A stretch of DNA of 64,000 nt from the sequence record MK250028.1; one strand, given 5' to 3'. The notes under the pieces are model-generated. The model made no database searches. It saw nothing but the letters and a program-made list of their open reading frames with translations, and was not told where the DNA came from. The position numbers and the translations under genes are program-made. Positions 5,120-18,507 of the stretch are shown piece after piece. Every line of letters begins with the position of its first letter. Position 1 is the stretch's first letter.

Positions 5120-5653
5120 TTAAGAATTTAAATAATTATGAAATGAACCATCATCAGAATCTCCAATAAGATTGTTCAATACATGCCAATACTCAAGATA
5201 ACGCTTTGCTTTCTCCATATCCTGTGTTTCTTTCTCCTTATGGTCAGATCTCCAAATATACTTAAATGAATTCAACTTACAGAAATCCATTGTTGCTTGT
5301 TTTCCAAATGTCTGAAGCATAGCTTCTATACATTGTAAGCCATTACCGCCAGCGCCATAATGATTTGGATGTTCAACAACATTCAAATTCTGTGTACTAA
5401 AAATAGGATTTAATTTTGTCTTATGTAATTGTAAATGTGCAGGTTCATCCTTAAATACAATCTTCTCATAATTCAACGGTTCTCTATTCTATTCAGCTAC
5501 ATTATCACTAATAGGTTCACCACATTTCTCGTCATTATCTGTTGCAACTTCATCGGTTCTATTAGAAACAAATACAATATCTTTCTCATCCTTTGTACGT
5601 GTAGGTTCACCATATACAGGTTCCTATGTACGAGTTTCCTTATTATAACTCAT
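5120..5653 (-). CDS. DUF3310-family protein (T7 gp1.7 nucleotide-kinase-like) with N-terminal extension
   Basis: VEHPNHY..QCIEAM..FCKLNSFKYIWR..K...QDMEKAKRYL motif; ATG at 5653 via two TAG=Gln. Confidence 0.7.
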
Positions 5654-5698
5654 ATTATATCAATTAGTTTTCATTTATAATTATACAGTAAAAATAAA

Positions 5699-6169
5699 TC
5701 ATTGTTTAATAGATTTTAACGAAATTAATGTAGTTCCAGATAAATCTATTAAATCTTTTTCTTTTGATGAAAAATCTAATATATGTTGTGTATGAGTTTC
5801 TTTAATTATACCATCGTTTTCCTATATAGGTTCTGGTTCAATTAACTAAGATAACTATTCATTATTATCTTTCTTATGTATCATATATACAGTATTCTGT
5901 TCTAACGCATCTTCTATTGAAAGCTCTTTAGTTGAACCATCAGCAAAATATGTTACGCTTGGTATTGGTGCATCTAAATCATAATACGTCTAAATAATAT
6001 CATATTTAGAAGTATCTATATCATTTATACTTTTAATATTAGTTAAATCATCTTCATCATTATTTTCATCTACAATATCTGACGTAATATCATTAACTCC
6101 TGTAAATTTTACTAATAGACAAAGAATAACAAAAAAACCTATACTTATTGATATTACTGGATCTATCAT
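5699..6169 (-). CDS. Hypothetical membrane-anchored acidic protein
   Basis: 156 aa open only under code 15 (4 TAG); N-terminal hydrophobic stretch; ends in TGA. Confidence 0.6.
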
Positions 6170-8549: not shown

Positions 8550-10130
8550 TTAAATAGTTCCATCAAGTAATTTATGAACAGCGTCTTGACGCGTCTTCCG
8601 AATTTCAGCAAGTGTAAACTCTCTTACTAACTTACCATCTTCAAAAACAGTCTTCAATTCATTCTTATCTGATGCTTCCTCTTCAGGCGTTACACGATCA
8701 ACTGGTACATACTTACCATTGCCATCTTTTACAACCATAAGAAGTCCACGATGTGATTTCTTTGGCATACCACATACTGTCTTAGGATCCTTATAAATTT
8801 CTATAGCTTTACCATCAACTTTACACCATGTAGACTTACAGGCTATGCCCAAAGAATCTCTGGATCGTACATTATAAGTAAAGCTTCCTATACCTTCAAT
8901 AAGGTTAGTTGCTGCGAAACCCTTATCTTCAAGTTGAGAATATGTATCCTTTTGGCGTTTCATATTAATTGAGTCTCCATAAAGAAGTCCAATATGTGGA
9001 TCAAGAATTTTATATCCTTTTTCATTAAATGTTCCACCGAACGTATTCCAAAGAAATTCATAAGAACCCATCTTTACAAATGGATCTTCTGCTTCCGGAT
9101 CACCACAAATAATTTTAACAGGATCACCACTATCAGGACGAATTACTACACGCCCATTACGAGACATAATTTGTTCTTTATACTTAGGAACAATCTTTGT
9201 CAAGAAATACCAATAATCATAACCATCTGCAACAATTGAAATAATACCATCTGGAAATTCATCAAGCATATTCTTAAAATAAACTTCATCATTTGGCTTA
9301 CCTGTTTCATCTGTTGCATTAGAGCACTCAATAGAATGTTCAGTAGCTGGAACAGTTGCAGCTATCAATTCTTTTTTAGGATCTGCATTATAATAATACT
9401 CAATCATCTTAATTGCTGGAACTGTTTCAGAACCACAAAAAGAAGTAAGATGTGCCATACCAGAAACAATAGATGCTTCAAATGAACTCATTCCTCTCAT
9501 AGAGAAATCATGACATAGAAATGCAAGATTAGACATATCGTTAGGATTATAAAAACCAGTTTTCATAGCATGTCTAACAAGTTCACGTTTAAATACATCA
9601 GCTGTTGTTGCAGAAGTAATTGGAAGCCAAAGGACATTTGAAGTCAAAGACTCCAAATAATTTGTGAGCCAAGCAAAATCAGGATGTGTATTTGTGATTG
9701 TTAAAATAGGGCATCCGATTGGACAATATGAACCTTCAGGAAGTGCCTTAATACGAATAGGAAGATAACCAAGTTTATGCAATGCAATAATATGATCAAC
9801 TCCTACTTTCTTTGCAACTGCTTCTCCTAGAAATGTAGTTGTCAAATCTGTATAAGTTTTTCGTACAGTATCTTCATCAAGGTTAAAGAAATAATTATTA
9901 AATGTATTAATAAGATACTTCTTAATAAAATACTGAATACCAAACACAACTGCTCCCTCTGTAGCTTCCGGAAAATATTTATTACTACGAGGAGTAAAGT
10001 TACTGAAAAGTTGTGTCATTCCCTTAGGGTACATACAGTGATGACCAAGCTTGTAGCCATCTGTCATAAGCATTGCATTAAGAAGTATGTCTTCTACCAA
10101 TACATGCTGTGAATCTTTTACGTTTGTCAT
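8550..10130 (-). CDS. nadV: Nicotinamide phosphoribosyltransferase (NAMPT)
   Basis: TDGYKLGH, HDFSMRG, VPATEHS, VVIRPDSGDP, LLYGDSI, KDPKT..KKS motifs. Confidence 0.95.
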   Translation of the reverse strand: MTNVKDSQHVLVEDILLNAMLMTDGYKLGHHCMYPKGMTQLFSNFTPRSNKYFPEATEGAVVFGIQYFIKKYLINTFNNYFFNLDEDTVRKTYTDLTTTFLGEAVAKKVGVDHIIALHKLGYLPIRIKALPEGSYCPIGCPILTITNTHPDFAWLTNYLESLTSNVLWLPITSATTADVFKRELVRHAMKTGFYNPNDMSNLAFLCHDFSMRGMSSFEASIVSGMAHLTSFCGSETVPAIKMIEYYYNADPKKELIAATVPATEHSIECSNATDETGKPNDEVYFKNMLDEFPDGIISIVADGYDYWYFLTKIVPKYKEQIMSRNGRVVIRPDSGDPVKIICGDPEAEDPFVKMGSYEFLWNTFGGTFNEKGYKILDPHIGLLYGDSINMKRQKDTYSQLEDKGFAATNLIEGIGSFTYNVRSRDSLGIACKSTWCKVDGKAIEIYKDPKTVCGMPKKSHRGLLMVVKDGNGKYVPVDRVTPEEEASDKNELKTVFEDGKLVREFTLAEIRKTRQDAVHKLLDGTI

Positions 10131-12343: not shown

Positions 12344-13357
12344 TTACATAATATATTGTAAAAGCATCTTTGTTTCCTCATCAGCTTTTAATTTTGGATA
12401 TGCAGCTCTAAGTATCTGTAATACACGTGTTTCTGTCATTCCATGTTCTTCTGCAACTTGCCATGTATTCTTTTCACCACGTCCATTAATACCATAGCAA
12501 TCACATACAATTTCACCATCTCTTTCACCAAGAACTCTCTTTACATTATCTTCAAGTTCTCTTTCAAGATCAGCGTTATTAAGATTACTATCAGGGTCTT
12601 TAAATGTCCTATTAGCTGTTACATCACCTAATGTTGTTTTAGAATCATCATCATCCCCGTATGATTTATCCAAACTATTTGCACGTGTATTTGCTTCCAT
12701 TGTTTGTGCAAATGTTTCATATTTCAAATCTGGATGTTTCTTTACGAGAACATTATAAATATCATCAATATCAGGTTCATAACCATTCTTATTATATAAT
12801 TGATCCTTGATACGAGCGGCTTCACGAGCAATACTACCCATATTACGGGGAACTGCCATATGTCCACCTACTTCATCAACAGCAGTCATAATTTCTCTAC
12901 GAATATACCAAATAGCATAAGATACAAAACGTACATCTTTACCTGGCAAACTTGGATCATATGTATCTGCTGCTTGCATAAGTCCTATATTTCCATATTG
13001 AATCATATCTTCCTTTGGTATATTAATATTTTTATACTTATTGACAACAGAAATAACAAATGGAAGATTTGCGGACACCAACTTATTCTTTGCTTTTTCA
13101 ACTTCTCTCTTATTATCAGAATGTTGAATAATATCAGCAAGTTTCACTTCATCTGCATGTGATAATTGTTTTTTCTTATTAATAGCATGTAAATATGCAA
13201 TAGTAGACTTTGCTGTATTTTCATCCTGTGTAATAGCAAAATCATCATGCAAATCCATATGCATTCCATTATTAGCTTCATTGAGTTTCTTTCTAATAGT
13301 CTTAGAAACACTCTTCATGATACTCTCATATAATGCTTTCTTTTCATTTAACTTCAT
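12344..13357 (-). CDS. RNA polymerase sigma70-family factor with N-terminal Lys-rich leader
   Basis: Region 2 KLVSANLPFVISVVNKY..DMIQYGNIGLMQAADTYD..RFVSYAIWYIRREI; region 4 LGERDGEIV..YGI..TWQVAEEHGMTETRVLQI. Confidence 0.9.
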   Translation of the reverse strand: MKLNEKKALYESIMKSVSKTIRKKLNEANNGMHMDLHDDFAITQDENTAKSTIAYLHAINKKKQLSHADEVKLADIIQHSDNKREVEKAKNKLVSANLPFVISVVNKYKNINIPKEDMIQYGNIGLMQAADTYDPSLPGKDVRFVSYAIWYIRREIMTAVDEVGGHMAVPRNMGSIAREAARIKDQLYNKNGYEPDIDDIYNVLVKKHPDLKYETFAQTMEANTRANSLDKSYGDDDDSKTTLGDVTANRTFKDPDSNLNNADLERELEDNVKRVLGERDGEIVCDCYGINGRGEKNTWQVAEEHGMTETRVLQILRAAYPKLKADEETKMLLQYIM

Positions 13358-13451: not shown

Positions 13452-14009
13452 TTATTCTATATTTAATATTTGTTTAATCTTTACTATGTCATCCTGTGTT
13501 ATACCTGAATAACTATCTATTTTTATAAAGTTATCCTGTTGATATGTCATCATATCATCATCGTCATCTACTATACAATAATCTATTTTCAATTCATCAT
13601 CTTTAAATTTAAAATAATCTTCATCATAAAATTGTTTATAGTTTCGCAAATTTGTATTTCCACTATACATAAGAAAATCATGAATTTCATTTCCTCTTAT
13701 TGAGTGTTCATCATGATATTTTGGTGTTATACCTACTATATATTTAATTAAACATTTCAAATCTTTATACTTATCAAACGCATATTTTGTTGCTTCTAAT
13801 GAAATCTCTCTCCATGACGATGATATAACCAATCTTACATTATAATTCTCACATAATTGTTCTATAAGTTTTACTGCATTTTTGTCTACAAAATGATCAC
13901 CATTTTCTTCATTTATATATTTCTTTCCTTCCTTTGTAAAACACCAATTCGCATATTGTTCAGAATTCAAAACGCCGTCTATGTCTAAAAATAATATTTT
14001 TATATTCAT
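13452..14009 (-). CDS. HAD-family phosphatase (Swiss-Army-Knife RNA-repair type)
   Basis: ILFLDIDGVLNS, LVISSSWR, RGNEI, YCIVDDDDDM motifs. Confidence 0.8.
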   Translation of the reverse strand: MNIKILFLDIDGVLNSEQYANWCFTKEGKKYINEENGDHFVDKNAVKLIEQLCENYNVRLVISSSWREISLEATKYAFDKYKDLKCLIKYIVGITPKYHDEHSIRGNEIHDFLMYSGNTNLRNYKQFYDEDYFKFKDDELKIDYCIVDDDDDMMTYQQDNFIKIDSYSGITQDDIVKIKQILNIE

Positions 14010-15255: not shown

Positions 15256-15295
15256 AAAAAGAAAAGTCTACCATGACTTACATCATAATAGACTT
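15256..15295 (-). terminator. Intrinsic terminator of the tRNA-like RNA operon
   Basis: AAGTCTA-TTATGA..TCATGG-TAGACTT hairpin followed by TTCTTTTT on the minus strand. Confidence 0.65.
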
Positions 15296-15322: not shown

Positions 15323-15418
15323 TGGATATAGATGGGCTCGAACCACCATGTATCTGTCCTAGAATTATGATACAAACTAACATCATATTAGTCGCGTTTA
15401 CCATTTCGCCATATATCC
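15323..15418 (-). tRNA. Atypical tRNA, nominal Ser(TGA), 96 nt with a 28-nt variable region
   Basis: Acceptor GGATATA/TATATCC, D arm GCG-AAATGGTAAA-CGC, anticodon stem ACTAA/TTAGT with loop TATGATG, T arm GGTGG-TTCGAGC-CCATC; A33, T37 and discriminator A are non-canonical; no encoded CCA. Confidence 0.7.
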
Positions 15419-15424
15419 ATATAG

Positions 15425-15498
15425 CAGGCCTGATGAGATTCGAACTCACAACAACATGATTAAAAATTCGTGTGCTCTACCAATTGAGCTACAGGCCC
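15425..15498 (-). tRNA. tRNA-Lys(TTT)-like with 8-nt anticodon loop
   Basis: GGGCCTG/CAGGCCT acceptor, GCTC-AATTGGTA-GAGC D arm, CACGA-ATTTTTAA-TCATG anticodon arm, GTGAG-TTCGAAT-CTCAT T arm; no encoded CCA. Confidence 0.8.
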
Positions 15499-15544
15499 AA
15501 AGTTCTATTTTAAATTTCCACGCAATAGAACTCCGAAGATTTGT

Positions 15545-15710
15545 AGATCTGTGTTCATGGTACTTAATCTAATGCTTGTTTTTAATACTGACGTGTTAAC
15601 CTCTTCACCAAATCCCCGATTAAATAATATGTAATAGAGGGGATTCATGGGTTCGAACCATGGATAATCAGTAAAATCATGATATATCACGAATGACACC
15701 ATGACAATCT
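15545..15710 (-). ncRNA. Circularly permuted tRNA-like RNA (YrlA/Y-RNA-like topology)
   Basis: Order on minus strand: ACTGA, T arm CATGG-TTCGAAC-CCATG, AATCCCC, 21-nt loop, GGGGATT, D arm GTG-AAGAGGTTAA-CAC, TCAGT; closed by distal stem TCATGGT (15698-15704)/ACCATGA (15555-15561). Confidence 0.7.
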
Positions 15711-15724
15711 ACGTTAACTGTAAT

Positions 15725-15803
15725 ACTAAAGCTCTTGACTCAATGCTAACGCTAAAATCTAGGATTCTGTTTATGCTAAATGTAATCAAGCTAATGCTTT
15801 AGT
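15725..15803 (-). ncRNA. Structured RNA element at the 5' end of the tRNA-like operon
   Basis: ACTAAAGC/GCTTTAGT and CTTGA/TCAAG stems; lies just downstream of a TAGACT-N17-TATAAC promoter. Confidence 0.4.
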
Positions 15804-15914
15804 CAATTTACATATGTTATATATGATATTATATTCAAAGTCTATTATTCATATCAAAAATATTTTTAAGAAATAAATATCATAAATGAATCAATAACAT
15901 TTATTATATAATAT

Positions 15915-17129
15915 ATGAATAAGAATTATAACAAACTATATGAAGAAATGATGTCAGATATTTCAGTTATCGTTAAAAAGAAAATAAATGAAGCATATGA
16001 CAATCAGCTTCTCGAAGAATATGGTGCAAAGGATATGTTTAATGATATTATGAAAGAAGCATCAAAAGAAGGTAAAATCTTTTATAAGCATCTTAAATAG
16101 TTTATAATTTATATCATCAAAAAATTACAAGAGACAGATCAATATAAAAAAGCTGAAAAACTTATGAATGCGTATGTTCAGAAAGTACAGAAATATATTG
16201 ATGAACATAAGAAGATTACTCCGAGACGTATGTTGAAAATTACTGTTGCTGTATTGACAATGTATGGAGGTGTTTCAATGATACAAGATTGTAAATAGAT
16301 GATTAAATCTTTATAGGGTAATGTTGAAACTTATGAATAGAAAGTAGAAAATGTACCGGATGAAAAGCAACAAGAAGTAATAGTAGAAGAACCTGAAGAT
16401 TTTGTTGTTGAAGTTAAAGATGAAGCAAAAGAAAAATTAAGTGTCAAGAAAGTATCTACTGAAGATATTAATAATACACCTGAAAAGAAATTTAAGGAAG
16501 ACAAGAATTTCAATTTTAAGTCAAGCAACGAGGCTCGCGAATTTATTAAACATCATGAGTTATGCTTACTTTACCCTTATTACGCAAAACCCGAAGAGGA
16601 AGCGAAAGGAATGGTAACTATTGGTTATGGTCATGTTGTATTGGAATCAGATGGTGAATTATACAAGAAAGTATAGCAATTAAAAAAGAAAGGCTTAATT
16701 AAACAATCATTTGTTACAAAAAATGGTAAAACTATTTTAAACCCTAATCATTGTAAAACCATTATAACAAAGACTGACGCAGATAAATTATTTTAGAAAG
16801 ATATTAAGATTGCTGAATAGCGTGCATATAGAACTATACAAAATATGCCAACAGATGATGATAATGTTAAATATTATATGTTATATAATCAAAAAATAAG
16901 AGATGGATTAACATCATTATGTTATAATGCTGGATAGCTTAAACATGAAAAATATACATTCATAACAAAAGGTCTTGCAAAATCTAGATATGATTATCAA
17001 GCATAGAAAATAAATGCAGGTGATTATAATGTATCCTTTAAATATTTCAAGAATATTAAAGATAATCCTAACAGAAGAAATGAGGAATATAAGTTATTCT
17101 TTATGAACGCAAATAAGTCTATGTCATAA
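15915..17129 (+). CDS. GH24-type phage lysozyme with long N-terminal extension and leader
   Basis: Open under code 15 (9 TAG); FIKHHE..Y..GMVTIGYGH, LTSLCYNAG and RRNEE motifs; ATAAATA at 15872. Confidence 0.8.
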
Positions 17130-17154: not shown

Positions 17155-18507
17155 ATGAAAAAATTATTTGAAGCAAAATAGAAGCCATTAGTTGTTTATA
17201 ATCCTGCTGATATTTTCATGAAATATAATATGAAACCTGGTGATTATGTTTCAATTGCATATGTATCAGATACATTATAGGGAGAAGGTGCTAACCCACT
17301 TGTATCAAAACGTGGTTCAAAAAAGCAATGTTATAATATAAATTCAGAAACGGACGCATAGTTATAGCAATATATTAATGCTATGCCTAATAATAGAATT
17401 AAATAGTTATTAACAGAATTTAGGGAATCTACTAAATATCAAAGCTTTTTAAATGGCACTGCAAAGACAAAAACATGTATGCTTGATTTAACAACAGAAC
17501 ATATACTTAAGATTAGTCATTTAACATGTAACTGGAAAGATTCTAAAGCATTAGCAAAATTTTATAAAAAATAGAATGATGCTGAATTAAATCTCCGTAG
17601 AGAATTTGGTTTTGAAGACGGTTATGATAATAATTATGAACGTTTTTATAATCGTAAAGATGATAAACCGGTACCATTGGATGATAGAACACCAGAAGAA
17701 AAAGAAAACGATAAAAATTGGAGAGATTCTTATAATGGTAGAAATGTAATGCCTCGTATCAAGAAAAATGGTAATGAATATAATATTGCAACTATTATTC
17801 CAGGAATTTATGCAAATTTAAATAAACCTGGTAATATTGCATTACGTTTTGCATATAACAGTCGTTCAAGTCATACAGATTCCGATTATTATTATGTAAA
17901 TGGAGATGGTACATTATTTAAGCTTGATATGGCATTTATTACATTCTTAACATATGCATATAAAAAGAATGCTATGTCTTCTGATAATACCGAAGAAAAG
18001 TCATATGTGTCAGATGAAGAAAAAGAATTTGTTTTAAGATTAAAGCAACTAGTAAAAGATGCACCTAGTACTGCTGAAATGACACTTAAAACAGATAGCA
18101 TATTATTTATGAAATCTACTGCACGTACGTCAAAAAATGCAAAGGTATCAGAAAATGTACCATTTGTTTGGATTAATACTAATGCTGTTGTAAATAAGTA
18201 TGATTTTGTAAATCCTTCTGATTTAAATAATGTTATTAAAAATCTTGTTTATTCTATAGATGATACTAATGTTAATGCGACAATTGAAAATATAAATGTT
18301 AAAGGCAAATCTATTTCAGATTTAGTTTCAACAACTGATGGTAAAGTAACTGCAGATCCGACAGAAGTAAGAAAGAGATTAGGTATTGCAGAAGCATTAA
18401 GATGTATTGCATATAAATATACAATAGAGAAGAAAAAGAAAGCACTTTATGAATCAATAATGAGTAAAGTTGCAAAAACTATTAAAAGAAAGTTACAATT
18501 AATTTAA
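17155..18507 (+). CDS. Hypothetical protein (450 aa) with the leader-like motif at its C-terminus
   Basis: Code-15 extension of track ORF 17677..18507; ends KKKKALYESIMSKVAKTIKRKLQLI. Confidence 0.75.

Follow-up and report, generated by a model that had tools for sequence, protein, structure and literature searches.

Few tRNA mimics have been described (transfer-messenger RNA (tmRNA), viral tRNA-like structures, the YrlA RNAs and mascRNA), and each of them has revealed new biology. [quoted passage not shown] The two-piece permuted tmRNA of alpha-proteobacteria, some beta-proteobacteria and cyanobacteria consists of two paired RNA pieces, and the permuted tRNA genes of some algae and archaea lose their acceptor-side junction to RNase P and 3' processing and have their anticodon loop restored through a bulge-helix-bulge (BHB), a splicing endonuclease and a ligase, which yields decoding tRNAs. 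Permuted tRNA genes have been reviewed (PMC4090602), and mascRNA is mentioned in 10.1101/312249. The YrlA RNA of M. smegmatis, whose acceptor is 7 bp long, is cut by RNase P in vivo, nibbled and CCA-tagged (PMC4201824; bioRxiv 10.1101/312249); a GNCGAAN0-1G motif close to YrlA's 5' end is the proposed Ro60 contact, and phage YrlAs have been reported beside phage Ro60 genes (PMC4201824). Here we describe an RNA element of this general kind, located at positions 15540–15711 on the minus strand of a 64,000-nucleotide stretch of sequence record MK250028.1 (the window), in which a tRNA 3' half, a 20-nt linker and a tRNA 5' half follow one another in that order and are closed by a three-part bulged helix.

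At the element locus the 64-kb stretch matches Prevotella phage Lak-B1, a megaphage of ~548 kb, with 100% identity (MK250020.1, ~201.2–201.9 kb), and the element occurs as a single copy in each Lak genome. A first-pass annotation, made from the letters of the window, had described it as a circularly permuted tRNA-like RNA that is closed by a bulged helix and has a YrlA-type layout, and folding and the covariation of 18 sequences bear this description out. Its coordinates and pairings all hold on the minus strand (acceptor 7/7, anticodon-like stem 6/6), while its 21-nt linker is right if the discriminator nucleotide is counted and is otherwise 20 nt. The distal bulged helix that it had drawn appears, as TAGAT-TGT-CATGGT with ACCATG-A-ACA-CAG-ATCTA, in the RNAfold minimum-free-energy structure, which gives both this closing helix and a leader hairpin. 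The parts of the element and of its transcription unit are listed in Table 1.

Homologs were found by IMG/VR pattern scans and a covariance model (R1), and then by a search with the conserved block that lies upstream of the element (below). Lak-A and Lak-C resemble the region at ~81% identity, more distant copies lie on contigs L155 (38.5 kb, 43% GC), L281 (174 kb) and L280 (554 kb), and the search with the upstream block added 21 further loci on contigs of 94–190 kb; a 15-mer scan of metagenome contigs returned mostly ordinary tRNA-His and tRNA-Glu genes. The homologs comprise 18 distinct sequences from Lak megaphages and from phage contigs of ~95–190 kb, and these carrier contigs, which come from gut metagenomes, are probably jumbo phages. 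In the 18-sequence alignment 94.4% of the pair cells are standard and two-sided changes are seen in 31 of the 41 pairs, with a covariation score of 0.65 compared with 0.19 for shuffled alignments and 0.03–0.16 when pairing partners are slid. None of 500 shuffles matched the pairing and two-sided values, and slid partners gave 6–18 such pairs and 24–46% pairing. Fitting this alignment to the model introduces some bias toward the structure, but unfitted MAFFT alignments agree. There the T stem changes among the Lak clades from CAUGG/CCAUG to ACGGG/CCCGU, the acceptor stem from GGGGAUU/AAUCCCC to GGGCGAU/AUUGCCC and the closing helix from CAUGGU/ACCAUG to CAUAGU/ACUAUG. The locus is also colinear in three DNA sequencing runs, two of which hold relatives with more compensatory changes (e.g., CAUGGU/ACCAUG to CACAGU/ACUGUG in the closing helix).

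The acceptor and T stems are 100% paired across the 18 sequences, with three covarying pairs in the T stem. Helices that have no tRNA counterpart covary too, namely the two outer helices and the leader hairpin, as does the anticodon-like stem, which relatives recode as ACACU/GGUGU, AUAAA/UUUAU and others. The stems have thus been recoded across very different phages while the element itself was kept, and this covariation shows the element to be a genuine non-coding RNA gene with a maintained structure. Its body folds as an L-shaped tRNA with a 7-bp acceptor, a T arm, a D arm, a 5-nt variable loop and all tertiary contacts; all 18 sequences share U8, A14, G18G19, A21, C48, the 5-nt length of the variable loop and a UUCGA T loop. 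It is not a canonical tRNA, in the sense of a collinear cloverleaf with an anticodon loop: ARAGORN makes no call at the element and sees only two ordinary tRNAs downstream of it, and the Rfam tRNA model (RF00005) scores 15.3 bits there, on the 5' half only, where the cut-off is 29. Since it has no anticodon the element cannot decode, and it probably acts as a tRNA look-alike instead.

The D-arm string of the element, UGGUGAAGNGGUUAACACG, is that of the ordinary bacterial tRNA-His(GUG) D arm; 91 of the 93 loci carrying it that ARAGORN classified are tRNA-His, and the loci that ARAGORN missed are also tRNA-His when read by eye. The body of the element is therefore evidently derived from tRNA-His. 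Phage L282 carries a plain tandem tRNA-His pair in which a 3' half, a spacer and a 5' half stand in the same order, and this arrangement together with the D-arm string makes it most likely that the element goes back to two tandem tRNA-His genes whose outer halves were lost. From the first gene it would have retained the 3' half and from the second the 5' half, with the spacer in between, and new mutually pairing flanks (the three-part helix and the leader hairpin) would have evolved where the anticodon loop had been. The identity of tRNA-His is gone: there is no G-1/C73 pair and no GUG anticodon, position -1 is U or C, and the discriminator N73 is U in 17 of the 18 sequences, G in L155 and A in a relative from run X12. 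Only the D arm and the body of the element are of the His type.

The linker, 20 nt long in Lak-B1, ranges from 17 to 130 nt over the relatives, with 17–28 nt in Lak, L155, L281, L298 and L307 and 67–130 nt, including a long inserted hairpin, in other lineages (contigs of ~77–186 kb). Its interior is unconserved but its ends are kept, with C74 in 18/18 and U(-1) in 17/18 sequences. Genuine tRNA genes of Lak-B1, L155, L281 and related loci (n = 62) have the same flanks, with C74 in 61, C75 in none and T(-1) in 45, where the background frequency of C is 14%. The presence of C74 without C75 in their tRNA genes suggests that these phages depend on completion of the CCA end, and a CCA-adding-family enzyme is encoded in six of the seven carrier phages tested. 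In MK250020.1 its gene lies around 320205–320594. The acceptor is exactly 7 bp long in all lineages and is stacked on the 5-bp T stem, an arrangement that serves as a ruler for RNase P and the 3' maturation enzymes. From linker flanks like those of real tRNAs, the 7-bp acceptor and the precedent of M. smegmatis YrlA, we infer with moderate confidence that the linker is removed as an intervening sequence to leave a two-piece, CCA-tailed RNA. The first-pass annotation had offered a precursor cut by RNase P into a chargeable two-piece RNA; the linker ends (N73-C74...U(-1)) give the cleavage indirect support, but charging is not supported, with a discriminator that may be U, G or A and with both the His (G-1, C73) and the Ala (G3.U70) determinants absent.

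The element appears to be the first product of an RNA-only operon that runs from a promoter-like site through the conserved block, the element, a spacer hairpin, tRNA 1 and tRNA 2 to a terminator (Table 1). Cotranscription, as originally suggested, is supported, here with the tRNAs; the promoter-like site and the terminator bracket an RNA-only unit. The 100-nt block is near-invariant between the Lak clades and is conserved in 15 lineages, and a search with the block alone found 30 loci, all of which have the element right behind it. Its conservation exceeds that of the element's stems and of the neighbouring proteins; from Lak to the ~95–190 kb phages its sequence is kept while those stems have wholly changed. 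It holds repeated UUAGC-type motifs and two ATTGA(C/G)T boxes and has almost no covariation. Sequence conservation of this kind, with little covariation, is the behavior of a DNA or RNA sequence recognized by protein rather than that of a folded domain, and the block may serve as an operator or promoter, or as a protein-binding RNA. We also considered a permuted group I intron-exon arrangement, with the block and the leader as the 3' part of the intron, and set it aside: the sole G before the 3' half lies in CAUG, the resulting loops would differ between clades and the block does not covary.

Table 1. Parts of the putative RNA operon in the window, in order of transcription.
Feature	Positions	Strand	Basis or remark
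Sigma-70-type promoter-like site, TTGATA-18-TATAAT	15828–15857	-	Consensus scan, 11/12 matches; a pattern match only
Conserved 100-nt block, ATTGACTAAAGC...TCCTAGA...TTAGCAT...ATTGAGTCAAGAGCTTTAG...	15712–15811	-	Directly 5' of the element in every lineage
Closing helix, 5' strands UAGAU, UGU, CAUGGU	15698–15711	-	Pair with 15544–15561; helices 1 and 2 covary
Leader hairpin, UCGUGA-UAUA-UCAUGA	15677–15692	-	Minimum-free-energy fold; in all lineages, 98% paired, two-sided changes in 5/6 pairs
Anticodon-like stem, 3' strand U+ACUGA	15668–15673	-	Pairs with 15586–15591
5-nt variable region UUAUC (C48 last) and T arm CAUGG UUCGAAC CCAUG	15646–15667	-	T arm at 15662–15646
Acceptor, 3' strand AAUCCCC	15639–15645	-	Always 7 bp, 100% paired, 6/7 pairs covary
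U73 discriminator (15638), C74 (15637) and remaining linker to position -1 (15618)	15618–15638	-	Linker-end conservation
Acceptor, 5' strand GGGGAUU	15611–15617	-	Covariation alignment
U8-G9, D arm GUG AAGAGGUUAA CAC, G26	15592–15610	-	tRNA-His-type; 18/18 invariant except one D-loop position; D arm proper at 15608–15593
Anticodon-like stem, 5' strand UCAGU+A	15586–15591	-	Covariation alignment
Single-stranded trailer, 24 nt	15562–15585	-	Holds conserved motif GCAUUAGAUUAAGU (15575–15562)
Closing helix, 3' strands ACCAUG, bulged A, ACA, bulge CAG, AUCUA, and tail CAAA	15540–15561	-	Fold and covariation
Spacer hairpin between element and next tRNA	15501–15532	-	Covaries, with AGUUCUAUU/AAUAGAACU in Lak-B and GGUCUUAUU/AAUAAGACC in Lak-A/C; a hairpin here in all lineages
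tRNA 1, 8-nt anticodon loop AUUUUUAA	15425–15498	-	Rfam tRNA 55.7 bits; ARAGORN
tRNA 2, long variable arm, 96 nt	15323–15418	-	Rfam tRNA 43 bits
Intrinsic terminator-like hairpin and U run	15264–15295	-	14-pair stem; 0.1 such sites expected in shuffles

What might such an RNA do? The reading that we favor, at a rough probability of 45%, is that the element is a permuted, tRNA-His-derived mimic that is matured to two pieces and acts in trans as a decoy or scaffold and not as a translation adaptor. The tRNA maturation machinery would treat the linker as a spacer between two tRNAs: RNase P would cut before G1, and the 3' side would be trimmed to N73-C74 and completed to CCA by the host's or the phage's CCA-adding enzyme. 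This would give a CCA-tailed RNA of two pieces, which the acceptor stem, the anticodon-like stem and the closing helices would keep joined, and it would act in trans on proteins that recognize the tRNA body or the acceptor end, perhaps as a decoy for tRNA-directed host factors (e.g., defence nucleases) or as a scaffold; in this last step our confidence is low. Many defence systems of bacteria act on the body, the tail or the anticodon arm of tRNAs, and phages counter them with tRNAs (PMC11464382, PMC11555353, PMC12851939, PMC12445682). The element shares its operon with tRNAs whose anticodon loops change fast (below) and with a highly conserved block, which points to a specialized tRNA-centred module that plausibly has a role in phage-host conflict over tRNAs, a role that is now directly testable.

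Several points weigh against this reading. Two-piece processing is read from the conservation of the linker flanks, and C74 and U(-1) could simply have been inherited from the ancestral spacer, though the rest of that spacer has fully turned over. In one paralogous module of L281 a UUCG tetraloop closes the 7-bp acceptor and rules out processing of this kind, so not all such modules require a free CCA end. The constant place of the element at the head of a tRNA operon, behind the block, fits a role in cis just as well as the candidate role of decoy or scaffold. Finally, the single RNA-seq run that contains related sequence (X18, a gut metatranscriptome) gave no contig over the element and no transcript ends. 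A 171-nt contig from that run joins a tRNA-2-like 3' part (15386–15324) to the start of the block (15811–15719); its junction, from 15324 to 15811, goes back 488 positions, and the contig ends 8 nt before the element. This could reflect a rearranged or tandem relative, a back-joined RNA or DNA carry-over. Possible but more doubtful than the reading itself is its extension to a whole class, in which the huge phages of gut Bacteroidota would have a Ro60-independent kind of permuted tRNA gene, not described before, from whose transcript the tRNA maturation enzymes remove an intervening sequence of up to 130 nt. The product, a two-piece, CCA-tailed tRNA-His mimic that lacks an anticodon and is made along with the tRNAs of hypervariable anticodon loop, would be turned against tRNA-directed host immunity or would regulate the phage's own translation apparatus.

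Could the element instead be a YrlA-type Y RNA that stays uncut, with a linker that merely caps it as a loop, a closing helix that binds a host Ro60 (Rsr) and a module that tethers an effector such as PNPase? The order of modules under a terminal stem is that of YrlA (PMC4201824; bioRxiv 10.1101/312249), and the 3' strand of the closing helix repeatedly has a bulged A and a bulge of 3 nt. However, the Rfam YrlA model (cut-off 69 bits) has no match at the element with E ≤ 10 in any of five lineages (the window, Lak-A1, L280, L281 and L155), and its 20.5-bit match in the window falls on a neighbouring tRNA; it does give sub-threshold matches of 27–36 bits to other permuted modules of L281, with 36 bits for the UUCG-capped one. 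Direct reading found no GNCGAAN0-1G motif in the leaders of the 18 homologs, and the sequence of the closing helix is wholly recoded between lineages, which ill suits a sequence-specific Ro60 site. Linkers of up to 130 nt with tRNA-type flanks are also unlike YrlA caps.

As to a partner, a Ro60/TROVE gene on the same strand within ~4 kb was one of our marks of YrlA membership. The first-pass annotation had noted that no Ro60 gene lies nearby, and a search of the entire Lak-B1 genome and of five more carrier phage genomes found none (four of them at least 90% complete; Lak-A1 was outside this search), although control genomes do match; phage YrlAs, by contrast, have been reported next to phage Ro60 genes (PMC4201824). 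The host might still supply the protein, as a Bacteroides control genome has a TROVE protein and a Bacteroidales host could therefore do so. A host survey (TROVE in 0 of 201) sampled an order around a ~1-Mb genome labelled Muribaculaceae and is uninformative on Prevotella. Two metagenome-assembled genome contigs, L178 and L188, whose records are titled Muribaculaceae, carry Firmicutes-type tRNA-His genes, and the genomes in question, like their relatives within the order, measure only ~1 Mb; their titles probably mislabel the taxon. With its motif, its partner gene and its model match all missing at the element, membership in the YrlA family is not supported, and we regard a Y RNA function as unlikely.

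We give about the same small weight to the element being a cis-acting leader of its tRNA operon, a tRNA-shaped 5' domain that recruits RNase P or other tRNA enzymes, or shields the 5' end of the precursor, and thereby controls how the unusual tRNAs downstream mature or how stable they are. The element is always first in the operon, right behind the block and 0–45 nt before a tRNA, and the extra permuted modules of L281 each lie directly upstream of a tRNA. But a leader has no obvious need for a full L-shape, invariant tertiary nucleotides, an acceptor of exactly 7 bp or linker flanks of the tRNA type, and most tRNAs in these arrays have no such module.

A small two-piece rescue RNA resembling tmRNA, with a charged CCA end and a three-codon tag in the trailer (GCA-UUA-GAU-UAA, Ala-Leu-X-stop), is improbable. 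It would account for the permuted topology, which is that of two-piece tmRNA genes, and for the trailer, whose motif is conserved across lineages in a form like GCW-UYA-GCN-URA and in most of them reads GCN-UYA-GCN-stop, with third-position and UAA/UGA variation and an A-rich stretch upstream. In many lineages this string can be read as Ala-Leu-Ala-stop, but it is interrupted in L307 (GCU UAA) and has no GCN in L281, and we therefore treat it as a putative binding motif; a similar string opens the upstream block, which also fits a binding motif better. No complementarity of the trailer motif to the linker or the block is consistent across lineages. The idea that the trailer displays two stop codons (UAR-NN-UAA) held in the first five lineages and was dropped when the larger set showed UCA, CAG and CAC there.

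The acceptor speaks against a tmRNA as well. The first-pass annotation had argued from a G3-C70 pair that the element is not one, and this is confirmed across the alignment, where pair 3:70 is G-C or C-G in 18/18 and never G.U, while the discriminator varies. Apart from the T loop, nothing at the element is matched by the tmRNA and permuted-tmRNA models. A canonical, one-piece, full-length tmRNA is already present in Lak (MK250020.1 414201–414610, locus L290:1501–1910) with G3.U70, A73 and a tag ending ...MAA; Rfam scores it at 47–54 bits, only at the cut-off, and ARAGORN makes no call. Lak also encodes SmpB (MK250020.1 116555–116986), which first raised the idea of a rescue RNA, but SmpB is absent from all four element-carrying phage contigs of ~150–185 kb examined. 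About 7 kb separate the tmRNA from the permuted element in Lak-A and Lak-C.

Still less probable is a true permuted tRNA gene, whose product would have its ends cut and joined and its anticodon loop recreated to give a decoding tRNA as in Cyanidioschyzon or Thermofilum. The order of 3' half, intervening sequence and 5' half with pairing flanks is the same, and the phage has an RNA-repair-type gene (see the HAD_SAK_2 domain protein below), but across the lineages there is neither a conserved BHB motif nor a common or recoverable anticodon. What flanks the anticodon-like stem is constant neither in length nor in sequence, and in L280 this helix just carries on for 10 bp. A BHB of the 3-4-3 type, placed by hand, would yield a UAA anticodon in Lak-B; it was dropped since this region differs in Lak-A/C, L155, L280 and L281. 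To our knowledge bacteria and phages have no splicing endonuclease, and no RtcB was found in Lak. Two decayed, functionless tandem tRNA genes, which the L282 pair might suggest and from which the element probably arose, are ruled out for practical purposes by compensatory changes that keep every helix, closing helices and leader hairpin included, in the 18 sequences, by the lack at the element of any remnants of the missing tRNA halves and by conservation across very different phages while the stems were recoded.

The two tRNAs that follow the element are unusual. The anticodon loop of tRNA 1 has 8 nt in Lak-B1 and 7 nt in Lak-B2 and B8. Its orthologs (L155:1856–1929, L281:1034–1107, L280:865–938, L002:999–1071 and others) keep the body (G1.U72, G73, C74) and have hypervariable anticodon loops, with CUA (an amber suppressor, in L155), UUU, GUU, AUU, UUC and CUU, and with U, A, G or C at position 33; this may reflect evolution of suppressors or escape from anticodon nucleases. 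The anticodon loop of tRNA 2 is UAUGAUG, with A at position 33, the loop of its L281 counterpart contains UCA, and in Lak-A the second tRNA is not next to the first. Elsewhere in Lak-B1 a tRNA with anticodon UUA, which would read UAA, lies at MK250020.1 344976–345047 (locus L287:477–549). Among intron-free tRNAs, ARAGORN detected no CUA suppressor in two Lak-B1 clusters (the Lak-B1 tRNA clusters are loci L285, L286 and L287), and several Rfam tRNA matches of 92–127 nt may have introns.

Further permuted tRNA-like modules lie between ordinary tRNAs in arrays on phage contigs of ~77–180 kb. In L281 they are at 5328–5473, 5592–5710 and 5832–5935, each preceded by GGAAWCTWACAGCAAA, and others are at L292:223–370, L293:11776–11929, L301:5370–5522 and L311:5207–5370. 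A relaxed structural scan for such modules is noisy (3–4 matches per shuffle) and is convincing only for those of L281. One further module type is a second conserved family, in which the acceptor covaries (CCUUCCC/GGGAAGG and CCCUCCU/AGGAGGG) and the flanks are again N73-C74...U(-1).

The window has a GC content of ~25% and is clearly TAG-recoded. When TAG is read as sense, long open reading frames (ORFs) open on both flanks of the element locus and their coverage of the window rises from 0.47 to 0.75; the ORF at 15915–17129 has nine in-frame TAG codons and that at 17155–18507 has six. This agrees with the published recoding of Lak phages (PMC7162821; 10.1101/2021.08.26.457843). A link between the element and TAG recoding was considered and dropped, as the loci on the ~95–190 kb phage contigs have no such signal in samples that are small and rich in tRNA genes. 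On the same strand downstream of the RNA operon are genes for a HAD_SAK_2 ('Swiss Army Knife', an RNA-repair-type HAD) domain protein (13452–14009), a sigma-70-like factor with regions 2 and 3 (12344–13357) and a NAMPT-family enzyme (8550–10130).

We found no prior description of this element family in the literature searched, and it escapes Rfam, ARAGORN and the tRNA finders. It lives in some of the largest known phages of human and animal guts. Among known RNAs, mascRNA and other MALAT1-type elements also have a tRNA shape within a longer transcript that RNase P recognizes, but they are eukaryotic and unpermuted. The permuted tRNA genes of Cyanidioschyzon merolae, some green algae and Thermofilum pendens share the order of 3' half, intervening sequence and 5' half with the element. 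Two-piece tmRNA shares with it a permuted gene, an intervening segment (excised in tmRNA) and a tRNA-like acceptor/T domain; unlike tmRNA, the element has a real D stem and has no G3.U70 or A73 in the alignment and no pseudoknots, and its tag frame is doubtful. Should the linker indeed be excised, the ordinary tRNA machinery would here turn a permuted RNA gene of a bacterial virus into a two-piece tRNA-like molecule.

The closest relative in design is YrlA (RF02553), which has the same permuted T arm, joined acceptor and D arm, makes the same tertiary contacts, pairs its two ends in a terminal stem and likewise lacks an anticodon loop; the M. smegmatis RNA even has the same acceptor length. 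The element differs from YrlA in its independent tRNA-His-type body, in a linker of 17–130 nt with tRNA-gene flanks where YrlA has a short cap, and in always standing first in a phage tRNA operon, just after a conserved block. The design of a permuted tRNA under a closing stem thus appears to have evolved more than once, and it does not need a Ro60 partner encoded nearby. The architecture itself was already known from YrlA; what is new here is its apparently independent origin, the absence of Ro60, a long intervening sequence with tRNA flanks and its occurrence in megaphages and probable jumbo phages.

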